Shown: positions 10,975 to 64,000 of the stretch, piece by piece | Numbering within the stretch: the first letter of the stretch is position 1 | Layout: every line of letters starts with the position of its first letter | From: Macrostomum hystrix | Taxonomy: Eukaryota; Animalia; Platyhelminthes | Length of the DNA: 64,000 nucleotides | Direction: 5' to 3' | NCBI GenBank assembly: GCA_950097015.1 | Contig: CATNEN010000029.1 | Coordinates: forward strand, 1,674,001-1,738,000 | Notes under the pieces: model-generated | The model's database searches: none | Told to the model about the DNA's origin: nothing | The model's input: only the letters and a program-made list of their open reading frames with translations | Made by a program: the position numbers and the translations under genes

Positions 10975-13560
10975 CAGGAGAGGGCAGAGAAAGGAGGAGA
11001 GGAGATAGGAGAGAATTGGGAGAGAAGATGGGAGAGAATTGGGGAGAGGAGATGACCGAGGGAAGAGAATTGGGAAGAGGAGAGGAGAAAGGAGAGAATT
11101 GGGAAGAGGACAGGGAGAGAATTAGGAAGAGGACAGGGAGAGAATTTGGAAGAGGACAGGGAGAGAATTGGGAAGAGGAGAGGGAGAGAATTGGGAAGAG
11201 GAGAGGGAGAGAATTGGGAAGAGGAGAGGGAGAGAATTGGGAAGAGGAGAGGGAGAGAATTGGGAAGAGGAGAGGGAGAGAATTGGGAAGAGGAGAGGGA
11301 GAGAATTGGGAAGAGGAGAGGGAGAGAATTGGGAAGAGGAGAGGGAGAGAATTGGGAAGGGGACAGGGAGAGAATTGGGAAGAGGAGAGGGAGAGAATTG
11401 GGAAGGGGACAGGGAGAGAATTGGGAAGAGGACAGGGGAGAGAATTGGGAAGAGGAGAGGGAGAGAATTGGGAAGGGGACAGGGAGAGAATTGGGAAGAG
11501 GACAGGGAGAGAAATGGGAAGAGGACAGGGGAGAGATATGGGAAGAGGACAGGGGAGAGAATTGGGAAGAGGACAGGGAGAGAATTGGGAAGAGGACAGG
11601 TAAGAGAATTGGGAAGAGGACAGGGGAGAGAATTGGGAAGAGGACAGGGAGAGAATTGGGAGAGAATTGGGAAGAGGACAGAGGAGAGAATTGGGAAGAG
11701 GACAGGGAGAGAATTGGGAAGAGGACAGGGAGAGAATTGGGAAGAGGACAGGGGAGAGAATCGGGAAGGGGACAGGGAGAGAATCGGGAAGGGGACAGAG
11801 GAGAGAATTGAGAAGAGGACAGAGGAGAGAATTGGGAAGAGGACAGGGAGAGAATTTGGGAAGAGTACAGGGGAGAGGATTGGGAAGAGGACAGGGGAGA
11901 GAATTGGGAAGAGGACCGGGGAGAAAATTGGGAAGAGGACAGGGAGAGAATTGGGAAGAGGACAGGGAGAGTATTTGGAAGAGGACAGGGGAGAGAATTG
12001 GGAAGAGGACAGGGAGAGCATTGGGAAGAGGACAGGGGAGAGAATTGGGAAGAGGACAGGGAGAGAATTAGGAAGAGGACAGGGAGAGAATTGGGAGAGA
12101 ATTGGGAAGAGGACAGAGGAGGGAATTGGGAAGAGGACAGGGAGAGAATTGGGAAGAGGACAGAGGAGAGAATTGGGAAGAGGACAGGGAGAGAATTTGG
12201 GAAGAGTACAGAGGAGAGAATTGGGAAGAGGACAGGGAGAGAATTTGGGAAGAGTACAGAGGAGAGAATTGAGAAGAGGACAGAGGAGAGAATTGGGAAG
12301 AGGACAGGGAGAGAATTTGGGAAGAGTACAGAGGAGAGAATTGAGAAGAGAACAGAGGAGAGAATTGGGAAGAGGACAGGGAGAGAATTGGGAAGAGGAC
12401 AGGGAGAGAATTGGGAAGAGGACAGGGGAGAGTATTGGGAAGAGGACAGGGAGAGAATTGGGAAGAGGAGAGGGAGAGAATTGGGAAGAGGAGAGGGAGA
12501 GAATTGGGAAGAGGACAGGGAGAGTATTTGGAAGAGGACAGGGGAGAGAATTGGGAAGAGGACAGGGGAGAGAATTGGGAAGAGGACAGGGAGAGAATTT
12601 GGGAAGAGTACAGAGGAGAGAATTGAGAAGAGAACAGAGGAGAGAATTGGGAAGAGGACAGGGAGAGAATTGGGAAGAGGACAGGGAGAGAATTGGGAAG
12701 AGGACAGGGGAGAGTATTGGGAAGAGGACAGGGAGAGAATTGGGAAGAGGAGAGGGAGAGAATTGGGAAGAGGAGAGGGAGAGAATTGGGAAGAGGACCG
12801 GGGAGAAAATTGGGAAGAGGACAGGGAGAGAATTGGGAAGAGGACCGGGAGAGTATTTGGAAGAGGACAGGGGAGAGAATTGGGAAGAGGACAGGGAGAG
12901 CATTGGGAAGAGGACAGGGGAGAGAATTGGGAAGAGGACAGGGAGAGAATTAGGAAGAGGACAGGGAGAGAATTGGGAGAGAATTGGGAAGAGGACAGAG
13001 GAGGGAATTGGGAAGAGGACAGGGAGAGAATTGGGAAGAGGACAGAGGAGAGAATTGGGAAGAGGACAGGGAGAGAATTTGGGAAGAGTACAGAGGAGAG
13101 AATTGGGAAGAGGACAGGGAGAGAATTTGGGAAGAGTACAGAGGAGAGAATTGAGAAGAGGACAGAGGAGAGAATTGGGAAGAGGACAGGGAGAGAATTT
13201 GGGAAGAGTACAGAGGAGAGAATTGAGAAGAGAACAGAGGAGAGAATTGGGAAGAGGACAGGGAGAGAATTGGGAAGAGGACAGGGAGAGAATTGGGAAG
13301 AGGACAGGGGAGAGTATTGGGAAGAGGACAGGGAGAGAATTGGGAAGAGGAGAGGGAGAGAATTGGGAAGAGGAGAGGGAGAGAATTGGGAAGAGGACCG
13401 GGGAGAAAATTGGGAAGAGGACAGGGAGAGAATTGGGAAGAGGACAGGGAGAGTATTTGGAAGAGGACAGGGGAGAGAATTGGGAAGAGGACAGGGGAGA
13501 GAATTGGGAAGAGGAGAGGGAAAGAATTGGGAAGGGGACAGGGCAAGAGGGTGGAGAAGA
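10975..13560. repeat. Purine-rich ~23-bp minisatellite (GGGAGAGAATTGGGAAGAGGACA)n
   Basis: Directly visible. All overlapping G/E/R-rich and P/L/S-rich ORFs here are translations of the repeat. Confidence 0.97.
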
Positions 13561-26019: not shown

Positions 26020-27846
26020 CTAGTAGATTCGACCATCGATATACAGTACGTCGGTTCGTCTCTCCAGGTATTTGGCTTCGTCGTCACCTTCATCGTTCTC
26101 CTCCAGCTGCAGGGCTCGCCACCAGTTGGTGCCGGTGCACTGCAGGCGCCGCATCTCCAGTCGGTGCCGAGTTTGTGCGTGAATCTGAGCAGGCGTTGAG
26201 TTGCTTGTGAATTTATAAACGTCACTATCCGCAGCCTCCTCGAGTTTCGGTGCCGACATTAGTAGCTGAGCATCGGCTTCTAAGCGGCTCAGCAGAGCCT
26301 CTCGCTCTAAATCTTCCTTCGGTGCTTGCAGAGACTTGACAACAAATTCGTGCATCATGGCCTGCGAGGATCGATACTGGTTTGTTAGTTCTTCCCTGTT
26401 CCTCTCCTTTGGCTTGCTGATGTATTGCTGCCTCTGAATCGATTCCATAATCTCGGCTCTGGTCTCATCTGAGATCGGGGCGATGCGCTTCAGCTTCTCC
26501 ATCATTCTTTCGTATTGAATCGCCCGCAGCCAACGCCGCACGGCCCGCTGAATGGTGACGGTAGCCCTGATGACCCTGGCCATGGACTTCTTTTCTTCCA
26601 GTTTGCCGCGCTCTCGCCACGACTTGTAGCGCGCCTGAATCTTGACGGCTGCCTCATCTTGCTGCTTCTGGACGAAGGTTCGCACCGTACTAGCAGGCAA
26701 GGTGCTCATCAGCTGAACCTCCATTTCTCGTTTCTCTGCCACCAGCTTGCGACGCCTGATGGCCACTTCGTATTCCAGCTCACGCCGCATCCGCGAAGTT
26801 TCAGTCTCCTCCCTGCGCCCTCTCTGACGCTGTCGAATCTTGCGCTGGAACTTTGCCAGCGATTTGTTAGCCCTCTTCAAATCGCGCCGCACTTTGAAGC
26901 TGCGCCAATTCGATTGGATCATTGTTGCCGCCCGAATTTTCAGCTCCATCGTGGCCCGATCGCCAGACTTTGCATCTAGCAGGCGCACAAAGTCCTGAAG
27001 CTCTCGCCCGAAAGTCACCTGCCCTGTCCATTTTGTGAGCAGCAGGCGCAGCCCGCTGTACTTCATAATTAGAGCTTCGAGTGAGTCGGGGTAGTTGCGC
27101 ACAATGGCCAGCAGTGTGCGGATGGTTTCACCAGCCAGCTCGGCTGATTCGCCTGTGGCCAGATCGTAGATCATTTCTTCAACCAGCGATTCGAACAGTG
27201 CCTTGTCCATTGTACGGCACAGGTCGGCCTGGTAGGAGATGCACGATCTCAGCAGCTTCAGCGTGCTGATCGGTGTCTCGGGGTCGTCGGTGACAAAAAT
27301 TTGCAGAAACCAGGGCGAGTGGATAACGTGGCTGATCATTGTTCTCTTCTGTCGGAGATAGTTGACTAGGAAACTGATGACCCTGTCGTAGCACTGAAGC
27401 AGTTTGTCGGCGCTCATTTCGGAATAGACTTTTTTCTCAGCCGCATCACAATAGCAGCCCTGAAGTCGCTTCGAAAGTACTAGTAGATTTTCGCAGAACT
27501 GCGGCACGAGTTTCTTTTCGAATGTCTCTTCCGGGTCCTCTGCTTTGGTGACATAAATATTCACCATGAGATTGTAGGCCAGGTCAGCTAGCTTTAGTCC
27601 AGTCTCCCAGGTGCCAACAATATTGGAGAAGTCTCTACGAAGCGACATCAGCAGCAGCGGTAGGAGATCAAATTTCCATATGTCCTGTTTCACAGCCGCG
27701 GCTTGTGCACTGCCTGCGGTGACTCGGCTAAGAATGTTCTCGATGCGAAGCAGCAGTTTTGGAAGGCGCCGCTCATCCTTGGTGTTCCCGATGTCCATTG
27801 CCAGCTTCTCGATTTCTGATATCTTCGAGCCCATTACCGCTGCCAT
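26020..27846 (-). CDS. IQCB1: IQ calmodulin-binding motif-containing protein 1 (nephrocystin-5), intronless CDS, 608 aa
   Basis: Helical N-terminal region, three IQ motifs (AATMIQSNWRSFKVRR, AAVKIQARYKSWRER, ATVTIQRAVRRW), coiled coils and a C-terminal NWWRAL resembling the NPHP5 WW motif. A possible 52-nt 5'UTR intron lies at 27899-27950. Confidence 0.9.
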   Translation of the reverse strand: MAAVMGSKISEIEKLAMDIGNTKDERRLPKLLLRIENILSRVTAGSAQAAAVKQDIWKFDLLPLLLMSLRRDFSNIVGTWETGLKLADLAYNLMVNIYVTKAEDPEETFEKKLVPQFCENLLVLSKRLQGCYCDAAEKKVYSEMSADKLLQCYDRVISFLVNYLRQKRTMISHVIHSPWFLQIFVTDDPETPISTLKLLRSCISYQADLCRTMDKALFESLVEEMIYDLATGESAELAGETIRTLLAIVRNYPDSLEALIMKYSGLRLLLTKWTGQVTFGRELQDFVRLLDAKSGDRATMELKIRAATMIQSNWRSFKVRRDLKRANKSLAKFQRKIRQRQRGRREETETSRMRRELEYEVAIRRRKLVAEKREMEVQLMSTLPASTVRTFVQKQQDEAAVKIQARYKSWRERGKLEEKKSMARVIRATVTIQRAVRRWLRAIQYERMMEKLKRIAPISDETRAEIMESIQRQQYISKPKERNREELTNQYRSSQAMMHEFVVKSLQAPKEDLEREALLSRLEADAQLLMSAPKLEEAADSDVYKFTSNSTPAQIHAQTRHRLEMRRLQCTGTNWWRALQLEENDEGDDEAKYLERRTDVLYIDGRIY

Positions 27847-59025: not shown

Positions 59026-59600
59026 ACTTACTCAAGCTAGGGTTAATATAAATATAATGCTTTGAATCAATTCTACAAATGATGTGTAAGCTGTTTACTT
59101 TTACAGTCTCATTAAATATTAGTTGTATACTTTACCCTGCTAACACAATTGCTACCCATTAGCTGTTTGAGCAAGTATTTCTCATGCATTCATTTGTCTG
59201 CGATAATATTGATTTTTTCTAAAACTGTCAAAATACATCAAGCACATTTAATGCAAACGACACAGTCTAACAAGTGAAGTGCGGAAATGTTAGTGTATAA
59301 CTTGCAAACCATTTGATCTGTAAGTACAGTTTTCACTCTCATCTGAATTTACTCCCGTTTTTTTTCAAATTATGTCCTTTTGTGGAATGAAAATTCTATC
59401 TATACTACTCAAAGAAATTAAAGTGTTAAATGAGCAGATTAAGCCTAGTTGGGCCAGATGGCCAGCGGCGCTTCCAAAGACTGATGAGGGTTTCGCCACA
59501 ACCACCATTTTTATCTCTGCGTGTTGCTAATGTGCACAAATTGCTTCCTTGGGCTAAGATAAGAAATCCAGACCTCTCGGTCGGAAGGCCAAAGCTTTAA

Positions 59601-59870
59601 CAGTAGAAAGAACACTCTATTTTTCCGATAGGGAACGACCACGGGGGTATTTCAAATCCCACTGCCGACTTCACGACAGCTCCCAAACCGAATGACCGAT
59701 TTTCGTAAAAGTCCACCATCAACTAACTTTCAAAGCCATCCGACGCCAGCATCGTCAAGATATTCAGCGATTCTTGTCGAAGACCCTGGTGACAAGGACA
59801 ACTAACATGCTTTGTATAAATCTCTATGCAAATCTATATTTGTTTAATATTTGAATATTCTAGGAGATAT
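59601..59870. mobile_element. MITE-like family C copy (internally deleted)
   Basis: Shares the terminus and interior with the 22245 and 32727 copies. Confidence 0.72.
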
Positions 59871-60183
59871 AGAGTGTATAAACATCTCACTTAAGTCATC
59901 TATTTACATGACATTTATACAGTAACTAGAATGGGAAACTGAAAGCCAAAGATACAGATGCAAAAATGCTAGCTAAAATGCAAGTCTGGCATATCAAATT
60001 ATCTGCAATAGTAAATAGTAAAAGCTGTCAATGTTGATTGCCGCACACATCTTGAGCCATTTCGATCGAACCATTTGAAGCGTCTAAAAATAAAAAAAAC
60101 GCGAAATTTAAAATTGATTCGAAGCTATAAAAAGTTACCTAGAGTACAGGTTGGTTTTAAAATGGCTACTTTGATACACCAGT

Positions 60184-60269
60184 AAAATCAGGACTTCTTA
60201 GAGGATAGAAATATATAATCTGATCATGCTAAGAGATTCAATATTATTAAAATACTTTCATCACGAGAA
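60184..60269 (-). ncRNA. SNORD61: Box C/D snoRNA, SNORD61/U61-like, distal copy
   Basis: C box GTGATGA (60264-60258) and D box CTGA (60191-60188). Guide TCCTCTAAGAAGT(C) is complementary to conserved 18S ACUUCUUAGAGGG. Intronic. Confidence 0.82.
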
Positions 60270-60431
60270 TAGTGTACGGTGGAAAATATTTTCAGATCAA
60301 ACAGATAGGCAAACTCACATTGCTATCCTACTCGTGAGTAGCTTCATCTGAAAAAATGTGACAGAACTGATGAAATACAAAAACCAAGACAAGGGCATTT
60401 TATAGTAGTCACTAAACTAAAGAAAACAATA

Positions 60432-60525
60432 AAGGTCAGAACTTCTTAGAGTTTAAGCCACATGAGAACGCATCAACATGACTGTTGTTGCATTTTTTCA
60501 ACAGAGAATGGTTTCATCATTTTTT
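60432..60525 (-). ncRNA. SNORD61: Box C/D snoRNA, SNORD61/U61-like
   Basis: C box ATGATGA (60520-60514) and D box CTGA (60439-60436). The 12-nt guide CTCTAAGAAGTT abuts box D. Confidence 0.87.
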
Positions 60526-60773
60526 AATGTACAATAGCTTCAATACACTAGCTACATTTATTTAAAATAGAGCCGTTTAAACTCACAGAATACGAACAAG
60601 TATAAGATGCTCAAGAATGCTGCACTTGTGTACAACATTCGTGTGCTGTTTAGATCTGAAATTAAGGCGATAATTATTGTCTTTTTTATTTTCAATATTC
60701 AAAGCATTTCAAAATACACTACAAGCAACCATACTACTGATATTCGGTTTCTGAGTAGTAAAGCGAGGATATA

Positions 60774-60865
60774 ATATTCAGAACTTCTTAGAGTTAAGGC
60801 CACACGAGAACGCATCAACATGATAGTTGCGCATTCTTCAACAGAGAATGGTTTCATCATTTTTC
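60774..60865 (-). ncRNA. SNORD61: Box C/D snoRNA, SNORD61/U61-like
   Basis: C box ATGATGA (60860-60854), D box CTGA (60781-60778) and the same 12-nt guide; close paralogue of the 60432 copy. Confidence 0.87.
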
Positions 60866-61064
60866 AATGCTTAGCCTCAATCTTAGCTGATTTACGAGTA
60901 AAATAGCACAAAATCTTTTAACAGATTGTGAAAACTTACAGAGTTTAAACAAGCATCAGATGTCCACCGGAAGCATCTGAAATAAAAGTGACAATGTGAT
61001 TTTTTACTTTAGAGGATTTTATTACATAACAAGCAAAGCACTACTCATGCTAGCTTCCTGAAAA

Positions 61065-61158
61065 GCATTCAGAACTTCTTAGAGTTACGGCTACATTTTA
61101 AGTACAAACCATCAAGGCTTGCACCCTGTTTCAACAATAGATGATTTCATCACAAATA
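61065..61158 (-). ncRNA. SNORD61: Box C/D snoRNA, SNORD61/U61-like, proximal copy
   Basis: C box GTGATGA (61153-61147), D box CTGA (61072-61069), the same guide and a short terminal stem GTAT/ATGC. Confidence 0.85.
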
Positions 61159-61218
61159 CTGGAATGCTCTACTAAAGAGTCAGATAATAACATGTCTGCA
61201 GCCACTGACACAGCAATG

Positions 61219-63202
61219 TTAGACGCCAGAAGGATAGCTCTCAGCCAGCCACCAGTCGGGCACGTCAATGCTGAGCCGGAGACAGGCGCGCAGAAACAGT
61301 CGCCGGTGCATCCAACGCGGCGCCGCAGCCAGCAGTCGCAGTAGGCAGCGCAGCAGTCTGGCCAGGACGGCATCAACGAAAGGCCGGTATCCGACAGCGC
61401 CCAGGGCACGCTGACGCATCGGGGTTGGTGCATCCGAGACTTCTAAGAAAACGGCAGCCACTGCCGGCGGAGAGAACGACGCAAGCAGGAGACGCAGTGG
61501 CAGCAGCAAAGGTAAGAGCAACACGGGCGATGACCGATCGCCGGCGATTAGGAGAATACCATTGGAGAGAGCTTCGGCTAGGGGGCGAAAATGCGGCGGC
61601 GGAGATTGCAGAGCAGATATTAGACGGAGTTGAACCTCGCCGCAGGCGGATCTACAGCTGTATCATTAATATTGGACATTGTAGCTAGGAAGCAGAGCAA
61701 TGTGGAGCAATGAGCCACTGGAACCATGAGACACTGGAACCATGAGACACTAGAACCTTTAGACACTGGAACCATGAGATACTGCAACCATGAAACACTG
61801 GAACCATGAAACACTGGAACCATGAGGCACTGGAACCATTAGACACTGGAACCATCAGCCACTGGAACCATGAGATACTGGAACCATGAGATACTGGAAC
61901 CATGAGGCACTGGAACCATGAGATACTGGAACCATTAGACACTGGAACCATGAGATACTGGAACCATGAGATACTGGAACCATGAGACACTAGAACCTTT
62001 AGACACTGGAACCATGAGATACTGCAACCATGAAACACTGGAACCATGAAACACTGGAACCATGAGGCACTGGAACCATTAGACACTGGAACCATGAGAC
62101 ACTGGAAACATGAGATACTGGAACCATGAGACACTGTAACCATTAGACACTGGAACCATGAGACACTGTAACCATTAGACACTGGAACCATGAGACACTG
62201 TAACCATTAGAACTGGAACCATGAGACACTGTAACCATTAGACACTGGAGAGATCAGAGACGGGAGTGCTGTGATTGGAGAGTACATTCGAGAGATGAGA
62301 CATGGGATTAAGAGGCAAGCAAGAAATCAGATAGGGTAGAGAATGTGTTGAAAGGAGCTCCGAGGGCCGCATCTGGTCCAGTTGCCAGAGATTTGACAAC
62401 CCATGTCTAATGGTGCCCCAAAAAGAGCAAAGCAGCCCTCGCACCTTCTGAGATTGCCGGCCAAGGCGCTGTCGGCTTCAGGCACACCCAGCTGCAGGCC
62501 AATCCGATGCCAGTGCCGGGCATAGGCAGCCAATTGCGGGCTGTCCGGGCCCTCATTGTCAATGCAGCGAATGCCAAAGAGGCGTCTGTGCAGCAAGGCG
62601 TAAGCAACAAATGCAGTCTGCACTGTGCGCATATCATCTGTGTTAAACACTGGGACGCCAACCACTGAGTTAGCCGCGTGAGTGTGCGCTCGACGAACAG
62701 CAATACTGGACTGGCCAGCCTGACAGGCGGCGTTTGCCGGATCTCCCAAATGCCAGGCGATCACGTGACGTGCGGTGGAAACGTAGCGACGCAGCGCTTT
62801 AATTGGCTGATCGGATCGGCCCGTTGCTGCCAGAACAGAAGACAGCGGAGCGAGCGATAAGCCAGTCATGAGGGAGAACAGTAGAGCGGCCATGCAGGAG
62901 GCAAAGTTATCCGCCAGTAAGTGAGTCGCTGCGCGTTGGTCGGCCTCAGATAGTTGACTTAGCTCTGGGATTTTAGTAGGCTTGCCGTCTTCCGTCGAAG
63001 TGCTGAGTTGCCGAGCTTCATCAAATGGATTCTTATGGACATTATTACCTTCTGCTGAAGTGCTAGGTTGCCGAGCTTCATCAAATGGATTATCATGGAC
63101 ATTATTACCTTCCGTTGAAGTGCTACGTTGCCGAGCTTCATCAAAGGGATTCTCATGGACATTGTTGCCTTCCGTTGAAGTACTCTGTTGTCGAGGAAAC
63201 AT
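61219..63202 (-). CDS. DUF2236 / MpaB-Lcp-like (ER-bound oxygenase / rubber-oxygenase catalytic fold) protein; exons 63202-62445 and 61651 (or 61657)-61219
   Basis: Family-like motifs ALRRYVSTARHVIAW, VRRAH (putative haem His), FNTDDMRTVQTAF and AYARHWHRIGLQLG. Phase-2 splice AG|GTGCGA..TAG|A continues into CGEVQLRLISALQSPPPHFRPLAEAL and a hydrophobic segment. Confidence 0.8.
61710..62245. repeat. 16-bp intronic minisatellite (CACTGGAACCATGAGA)n
   Basis: Directly visible inside the DUF2236 intron; a ~240-bp block is repeated (~61745 and ~61985). Confidence 0.93.
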
Positions 63203-64000
63203 TTTATATTAAGCGAAAGACATTTTTTTTAATACCGAGTAACAGCAATTTTGTTAATGCTTTTTAACGTTTTATTTCAATCGCAGTAGCGTCAATGATG
63301 CGGAAGAGCGAATGCACGTTTAACTGAAAAGCAGACGAGAAAACTTTATTATTATATTATTCCACATCACTAGCAAATGAGGATTTAAATTATGATCTAC
63401 TATTATTATGATTTTTTACTAGCCTATAAGCGAAGATGCAAAACGGAAGCTATAACAATGTTCGCGAATCACGGGGTGAGCTAGCAGATATGCGCACGCT
63501 AGATCACACGTTAAATACGCGGAGATTATTCTACCTGCCATTTTCTCTGTCAATCACTTTATTTATAATTACAGTGTGACAGCAAGTGGGCAGGTGGTTA
63601 TTCTATCGACCCCACACTCTAATTATAAGTACAAGATCAAACCAAATGTAACAGAAACCGATAAAAACGTATCCTTTTCATTGGAAAATGACTTCTAATT
63701 AATTTTTGAGCAGAAGATCCGAAAAATGCTTTTTTACTAATAAACCAACCTTTTTTGCTTACAAAACAACAAACAGGAAATAATGAAACACTTTACTTAG
63801 CAACTAAATCTTAAAAGTTTTAAGTTTATCGTGCTTGCAGTGTTTTTCAGAGAAACTTTCAGCTACGTGTATTTAGGATTAGCAAAATAAATATTAGTCA
63901 AGCCGGATGTACATGAACTATTGCGGAAATGAAGCTAACGCTCTATAGGTATCGAGTCTTAGCAGTATAAACAACAAAAAGCGAATTGCAATTTCAACGA

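Follow-up and report, generated by a model that had tools for sequence, protein, structure and literature searches.

Four candidate U61/SNORD61-group snoRNAs in the probable spliced 3' untranslated region of an MpaB/DUF2236-like gene of Macrostomum hystrix

A 64,000-nt stretch of the flatworm Macrostomum hystrix genome (contig CATNEN010000029.1, positions 1,674,001 to 1,738,000), referred to here as the window, carries on its minus strand a protein-coding gene of two coding exons related to the MpaB/DUF2236 family. Downstream of its stop codon lie four short units with the layout of box C/D small nucleolar RNAs (snoRNAs), each within a separate intron. Positions are counted from the first letter of the window. 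The exons and introns, supported by assembled transcript contigs and, in the coding part, by translation, are given in the order of the transcript:

62445..63323, minus strand: first exon, with the 5' untranslated region (UTR), ATG at 63202, and 252 full codons plus 2 nt (contigs, translation)
61658..62444, minus strand: coding intron, 787 nt, GT..AG, joint 61657/62445 in both runs
61210..61657, minus strand: second coding exon, with 1 nt of the split codon, 145 codons, TAA at 61221-61219 and 9 nt of 3' UTR
60977..61209, minus strand: 3' UTR intron 1, 233 nt, GTCAGT..TTTCAG, joint 60976/61210
60940..60976, minus strand: mini-exon 1, 37 nt, non-coding, unconserved in M. lignano
60656..60939, minus strand: 3' UTR intron 2, 284 nt, GTAAGT..TTTCAG, joint 60655/60940
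60587..60655, minus strand: mini-exon 2, 69 nt (contigs)
60348..60586, minus strand: 3' UTR intron 3, 239 nt, GTGAGT..TTTCAG, joint 60347/60587
60319..60347, minus strand: mini-exon 3, 29 nt (contigs)
60084..60318, minus strand: 3' UTR intron 4, 235 nt, GTGAGT..TTTTAG, joint 60083/60319
59784..60083, minus strand: last exon, at least 300 nt, with ATTAAA at 59848; the contig ends at the edge of a high-copy transcribed repeat

The transcript data consist of two public runs of one study, X4 and X5, in the form of Logan contigs. These runs are not recorded as RNA, but must derive from it because they contain five spliced joints. A single contig per run (1787 nt in X4, 1572 nt in X5) joins both coding exons, the three mini-exons and the last exon in six genomic pieces: 63324 (X4) or 63374 (X5) to 62445, 61657 to 61210, 60976 to 60940, 60655 to 60587, 60347 to 60319, and 60083 to 59784. 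The joints 61657/62445, 61210/60976, 60940/60655, 60587/60347 and 60319/60083 occur in both runs, all of them GT..AG on the minus strand. The unusual GTCAGT donor, whose GT at 61209-61208 lies 9 nt downstream of the stop, is thus in use, and exon junctions fall 9, 46, 115 and 144 nt past the stop. Neither an intronic contig nor another 3' end of the coding RNA is seen among the X4 and X5 contigs, in which the depth bins are wholly accounted for by exon pieces. Runs X1 and X2 cover just 260 nt of exon 1, in one piece, besides the repeat at 59584-59808. This repeat is a short, very high-copy transcribed sequence with a summed contig depth above 1000 in X4 and X5 and many variants and joints, and runs of two other organisms contain it as well. 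The last exon of the host gene borders on it, and the host contig stops there, short of a defined 3' end.

The reading frame runs from the ATG at 63202 to 62445 (758 nt) and from 61657 to 61219 (439 nt), which together make 399 codons including the stop. Neither coding exon holds an internal stop and, by arithmetic, the frame is continuous across the coding intron. The product of exon 1 matches Pfam PF09995 marginally (24.4 bits, E 3.4e-5, with a cut-off of 23). PF09995 is the MpaB/Lcp catalytic domain, formerly DUF2236, and the domain begins in exon 1. A word-based protein search with exon 1 returned a sole match, M. lignano BOX15_Mlig022926g1 (P0001, 340 aa). A direct Pfam scan of this homologue gave no match; phmmer linked it to 150 remote relatives at E up to 0.001 (best 9e-21), and PF09995 was present in five of the eight relatives scanned, in four above the cut-off (38-49 bits) and in one at 21 bits. 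Through these homologues the host protein is assigned by similarity to PF09995. In a codon comparison with the M. lignano gene, dN/dS was 0.15 in exon 1 and 0.17 in exon 2 (dS ~1.2), which indicates purifying selection on both coding exons. At its N-terminus the protein contains 3.5 copies of a 20-aa NPF repeat (62989-63195, minus strand, DNA period 60) that is absent from the M. lignano protein. This repeat has a weak Pfam NPF match, and its motifs are potential EH-domain ligands.

The minus strand of the window contains four copies of the 16-mer CTCTAAGAAGTYCTGA, composed of a 12-nt guide and box D, at 61084-61069, 60793-60778, 60451-60436 and 60203-60188. The chance expectation is 0.01, and none of 100 shuffles gave four copies. 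Upstream of each copy stands one RTGATGA C box (61153, 60860, 60520 and 60264, respectively), so defining the following units:

61069..61153, minus strand: snoRNA unit 1, type I, 85 nt, C box GTGATGA, D box CTGA, guide CTCTAAGAAGTT
60778..60860, minus strand: snoRNA unit 2, type I, 83 nt, C box ATGATGA, D box CTGA
60436..60520, minus strand: snoRNA unit 3, type I, a near-copy of unit 2, 85 nt
60188..60264, minus strand: snoRNA unit 4, type II, the most SNORD61-like, 77 nt, guide CCTCTAAGAAGTC

The distances from D box to acceptor are 92, 122, 88 and 104 nt for units 1 to 4. Spacings of this order reportedly favour splicing-coupled assembly and processing of C/D small nucleolar ribonucleoproteins (snoRNPs), a view attributed to Hirose and Steitz in 2001 (cited in PMC4233243). 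The first-pass annotation, made from the DNA letters, had described much of this architecture, and its account of four minus-strand C/D units of 77-85 nt, each in its own intron between mini-exons of 37, 69 and 29 nt, agrees with the measured lengths (85, 83, 85 and 77 nt) and with the joints of both runs. The donor that it had placed 9 nt after the stop is used (joint 61210/60976), its D-box-to-acceptor range of 88-122 nt stands, and its splice sites hold apart from the last acceptor, which is TTTTAG and not TTTCAG.

Comparison with M. lignano provides a second view of the arrangement. The homologous locus on NIVC01001130.1, here L001, has the gene order RPS3, a gene for a 1127-aa protein, and the DUF2236 homologue. 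In both loci the protein ends seven residues after WWLA and is followed by the stop, 9 nt and GT. Downstream of the stop, L001 contains three U61-type units in separate putative introns with plausible acceptor/donor pairs, the units standing 83-90 nt upstream of the predicted acceptors; two mini-exons are predicted between them, at about 12225-12264 and 12501-12535. The synteny check that the first-pass annotation had proposed for related species thus returned both the stop-to-donor spacing and three such units. Contigs of the remote homologues P0002 and P0003, ~1 kb long, lack flanks, and the comparison of the arrangement covers the two Macrostomum loci. When the window is compared with L001 by blastn, the coding exons and snoRNA units alone align, while the mini-exons and intron flanks do not; unit 4 aligns to L001 units A and C at 80-83%. 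Alignment confined to coding exons and snoRNA units is the classic signature of a snoRNA host. The arrangement of UHG- and GAS5-type hosts, with one snoRNA per intron between short and less conserved exons, is accordingly found both in the splice joints and in the L001 alignment. L001 may be an orthologue in a sister species or an old paralogue. A reading of L001 as a paralogue in the same genome was dropped in favour of the term homologous because another open reading frame (ORF) of the window, at 26020-27846 on the minus strand, is just 89% identical to its M. lignano match. That ORF encodes a 608-aa IQ-motif protein, and the identity to its best match extends over the full length; the value suggests that the window derives from a Macrostomum species related to M. 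lignano or from a diverged homeologue.

Across the four window units and the three of M. lignano, an RTGATGA C box and a CTGA D box are present throughout, with C-to-D lengths of 67-85 nt. TGATGA, CTGA and the guide are invariant in the alignment (7/7), and the interior is variable. Two subtypes can be distinguished. Window units 1-3 and L001 unit B form type I, whose guide ends in GTT. Window unit 4 and L001 units A and C form type II; their guide ends in GTC, and they have a CTGA/ATGATCA D'/C' pair placed as in human SNORD61. The stretches between the C box and candidate D' boxes show no conservation among the aligned units. A second target through D' guides is not proposed, since these stretches differ among units.

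The 12-13 nt guide is identical to the printed consensus guides of SNORD61, plant snoU61, snoR01 and Dictyostelium DdR1, in agreement with the SNORD61-type guide named in the first-pass annotation. Human SNORD61 (U61) is hosted by RBMX and targets 18S U1442 (PMC3511933), as that annotation had also stated, and Arabidopsis U61 (Um1381) has been equated with human U61 (Um1442) (PMC3511168). The members of the SNORD61 clan are regarded as a single group of orthologues that dates back to the last eukaryotic common ancestor (PMC3511168). In Rfam, SNORD61 is RF00270 of clan CL00067, with a gathering threshold of 43 bits. The Infernal check proposed at first pass has a divided outcome: no window unit attains the threshold, and in E-value mode SNORD61 is matched by unit 4 (34.6 bits, E 0.0063) and by unit 1 (26.6 bits, beside DdR1 at 19.1 bits). 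Units 2 and 3, without a SNORD61 match, are matched in the same mode by DdR1 (21.9 and 28.1 bits) and snoU61 (16.9 and 18.2 bits). M. lignano unit A scores 44.6 bits against SNORD61 and so passes the threshold, so that the locus family as a whole is likely to belong to the SNORD61 clan. Counting five nucleotides upstream from CUGA, according to the box D+5 rule, leads to an A opposite the second U of AACUU in AACUUCUUAGAG. Because the human RNA has the same guide beside its D box, the predicted target of all four units is one 18S uridine, the equivalent of human Um1442.

These observations are best explained if a conserved MpaB/DUF2236-like coding gene has this region as its spliced 3' UTR, which serves as a UHG-style snoRNA host, with one U61/SNORD61-group unit per intron, a reading to which a probability of about 80% is given. 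The pre-mRNA would run past the stop through four short introns, each with one C/D snoRNA of this group, and snoRNPs would assemble on the introns during splicing. Debranching of the excised introns and trimming by exonucleases would then leave the snoRNP-protected core of ~80-90 nt, a step proposed because intronic C/D snoRNAs are made in this way in other animals. Sharing the same 12-13 nt guide, all four RNAs are expected to direct fibrillarin to 2'-O-methylate the same 18S uridine. The spliced product would be an mRNA with three unconserved mini-exons (37, 69 and 29 nt) in its 3' UTR, which amounts to a real ORF with a UHG/GAS5-style host attached downstream, and snoRNA output would be tied to transcription of the host gene or of a trans-spliced unit containing it. 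The coding mRNA and the snoRNA host would be the same molecule, because the contigs join the parts and the complete ORF ends 9 nt before the donor.

Several points weigh against this reading. The transcript evidence consists of assembled contigs of long RNA, and the mature snoRNAs are predicted. Introns past the stop on a transcript with the full ORF are seen in the contigs of two runs, although these contigs are not single molecules and a de Bruijn contig can fuse two overlapping transcript populations. At gathering thresholds, Rfam gave no match in the whole window, SNORD61 included. Terminal stems are weak, with best ungapped flank pairings of 0-6 bp (a 5-bp stem is possible in unit 1). Short or absent terminal stems are frequent in intronic animal snoRNAs. 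The target is deduced from the conserved guide and not from pairing with the species' own 18S. In L001, the stretch with the stop and donor is the first copy of a 25-nt minisatellite, and the donor there, a GTAGGT in one of the copies, is predicted and not transcript-based.

The structure of the contigs bears on the possibility that two units overlap, an independent non-coding host starting, or being trans-spliced, inside exon 2 and the contig being an assembly merger. Contigs cannot phase distant parts of a transcript, which leaves room for such a merger. A complete coding mRNA must nonetheless reach 61219, 9 nt before the donor, and no contig runs unspliced into 61209-60977 or points to another 3' end. 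Exon 2 contains no AATAAA, and the stop-to-donor spacing is the same in M. lignano. An AATAAA lies near 61022, in 3' UTR intron 1. Two overlapping units are therefore considered improbable. The first-pass proposal that the coding mRNA and the snoRNA host are one thus gains single contigs through the coding sequence and mini-exons in two runs, and an additional start in exon 2 is compatible with the same contigs.

The low scores and weak stems could also be taken to mean that the units are decayed or non-functional snoRNA-derived repeats, lying in ordinary 3' UTR introns and yielding no stable guide RNA. This reading draws in addition on the kind of support for the units, which is sequence and long-RNA contigs. 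It sits poorly with boxes and guide that are invariant in seven units while the surroundings, mini-exons included, are beyond alignment at a dS of ~1.2. Each intron carries one unit at the favoured distance from the acceptor, and one M. lignano unit exceeds the SNORD61 threshold. Decay of the whole array is accordingly regarded as highly improbable.

With the spliced-host anatomy left as it is, the junctions raise the question of a regulatory role, in which the mRNA would be a constitutive substrate of nonsense-mediated decay (NMD), the locus would be mostly a snoRNA source, and enzyme output would be throttled. For NMD dependent on the exon-junction complex, the relevant position is a junction more than ~50-55 nt past the stop; those at 115 and 144 nt lie beyond it, and the others lie at 9 and 46 nt. 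Among the targets of NMD in human cells, snoRNA host genes are over-represented, and no feature is a stronger predictor than an intron in the 3' UTR (PMC4233243, PMC5238794). The idea, built by analogy from junction positions and human data, must be set against a fully spliced RNA abundant enough for assembly in two small runs and against an ORF under purifying selection in both loci, which implies that the protein matters. The dependence of NMD on exon junctions also differs among invertebrates. Such a role for the locus is judged unlikely on balance.

The closest known system is the minifly/Nop60B (mfl) gene of Drosophila, with the snoRNA cluster of its 3' UTR (Riccardo et al. 2007, PMC1821038). 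As in M. hystrix, a coding gene carries four isoforms of a single box C/D snoRNA (there DmSnR60), one per 3' UTR intron, and conservation peaks at the snoRNAs and not at the UTR exons. The two differ in that the snoRNA-bearing 3' UTR exons of mfl belong to alternative, sex-biased longer isoforms, whereas the spliced tail is the sole form seen here, begins 9 nt after the stop and appears constitutive. Moreover, mfl encodes a ribosome-biogenesis enzyme and has a 5' terminal oligopyrimidine (TOP) start, in contrast to an MpaB/DUF2236-like protein without a known ribosome link and a Macrostomum host that appears to be trans-spliced. Because mfl/Nop60B already has four C/D isoforms in 3' UTR introns, the design is a known and hence ordinary one, and the first-pass annotation overrated its novelty.

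Other hosts share parts of the arrangement. UHG/SNHG1, GAS5 and Drosophila dUhg likewise carry one snoRNA per intron between short unconserved exons, with the snoRNAs as the conserved part. They have no conserved ORF, and in this respect the M. hystrix gene departs from the UHG/GAS5 type, having an ORF of ~398 codons, a dN/dS of 0.15-0.17 and PF09995 homologues. Human SNORD61, plant snoU61 and DdR1 have the identical guide adjacent to the D box and thus the same predicted 18S target, and the D'/C' layout of human SNORD61 is common to unit 4 and M. lignano units A and C. Human SNORD61 differs in being a single copy in a coding-region intron of RBMX, whereas four copies of two subtypes are found here in the 3' UTR introns of an unrelated host. 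This difference fits the known mobility of snoRNAs, which change hosts (PMC3511168).

U14 in hsc70 and U17 in Xenopus RPS8 are further snoRNAs whose multiple copies are distributed among the introns of a single coding host. As in M. hystrix, several copies of one guide RNA each occupy a different intron of one gene, with the difference that those introns interrupt the coding region and the present ones the 3' UTR.

No paper on Macrostomum snoRNAs was found in the literature, and the U61-type RNAs of this genus are therefore probably unannotated. The locus would thus add U61/SNORD61-type snoRNAs to a flatworm genus used as a regeneration model, and it corrects the model of the MpaB/DUF2236-like gene, which gains four introns in its 3' UTR. 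It further suggests that a UHG-style host behind a real ORF, documented so far for Drosophila mfl, is also present in flatworms and has been kept between Macrostomum lineages. Since every mRNA seen has junctions 115 and 144 nt past the stop, the gene would make a handy natural reporter for the reading of junctions by flatworm NMD. Current understanding is not overturned by this well-supported but fairly ordinary find, which is of modest interest.

On the upstream side of the host gene, a TTTTCAG acceptor lies at 63324-63330 (minus strand). It is precisely at this acceptor that the X4 contig departs from the genome, with 24 letters that are off the window, and 63324 is a possible spliced-leader trans-splicing site of the host gene. 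Contigs of X5 read through this acceptor into an element at 63456-63594 (minus strand), ~130-270 nt upstream of it. The element is matched twice upstream of the M. lignano homologue (L001 8449-8622 and 9623-9796) at 77-85% identity. Guide RNAs thus seem to border the host gene on either side, those upstream being H/ACA candidates. On the scale of an operon, the enzyme gene might be the last cistron of a trans-spliced unit started by RPS3, with H/ACA snoRNAs upstream of its acceptor, the C/D array in its 3' UTR and the enzyme level trimmed by NMD, the whole being conserved between Macrostomum species. If so, one ribosomal-protein promoter would supply the mRNA of a ribosomal protein, rRNA guides of two classes and, as a passenger, the mRNA of the enzyme. 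This larger scheme is distinctly unlikely as it stands.

Tandem repeats are a further feature of both loci. The coding intron of the M. hystrix gene contains a minisatellite with a 16-nt unit in 34 copies (61710-62249, TRF). In L001, the minisatellite at 11384-11991 has a 25-nt unit in 24 copies and begins at the stop codon, so that the stop-plus-donor motif is repeated through the first 3' UTR intron. A large minisatellite is therefore present in each locus, but in different introns and with unrelated units.

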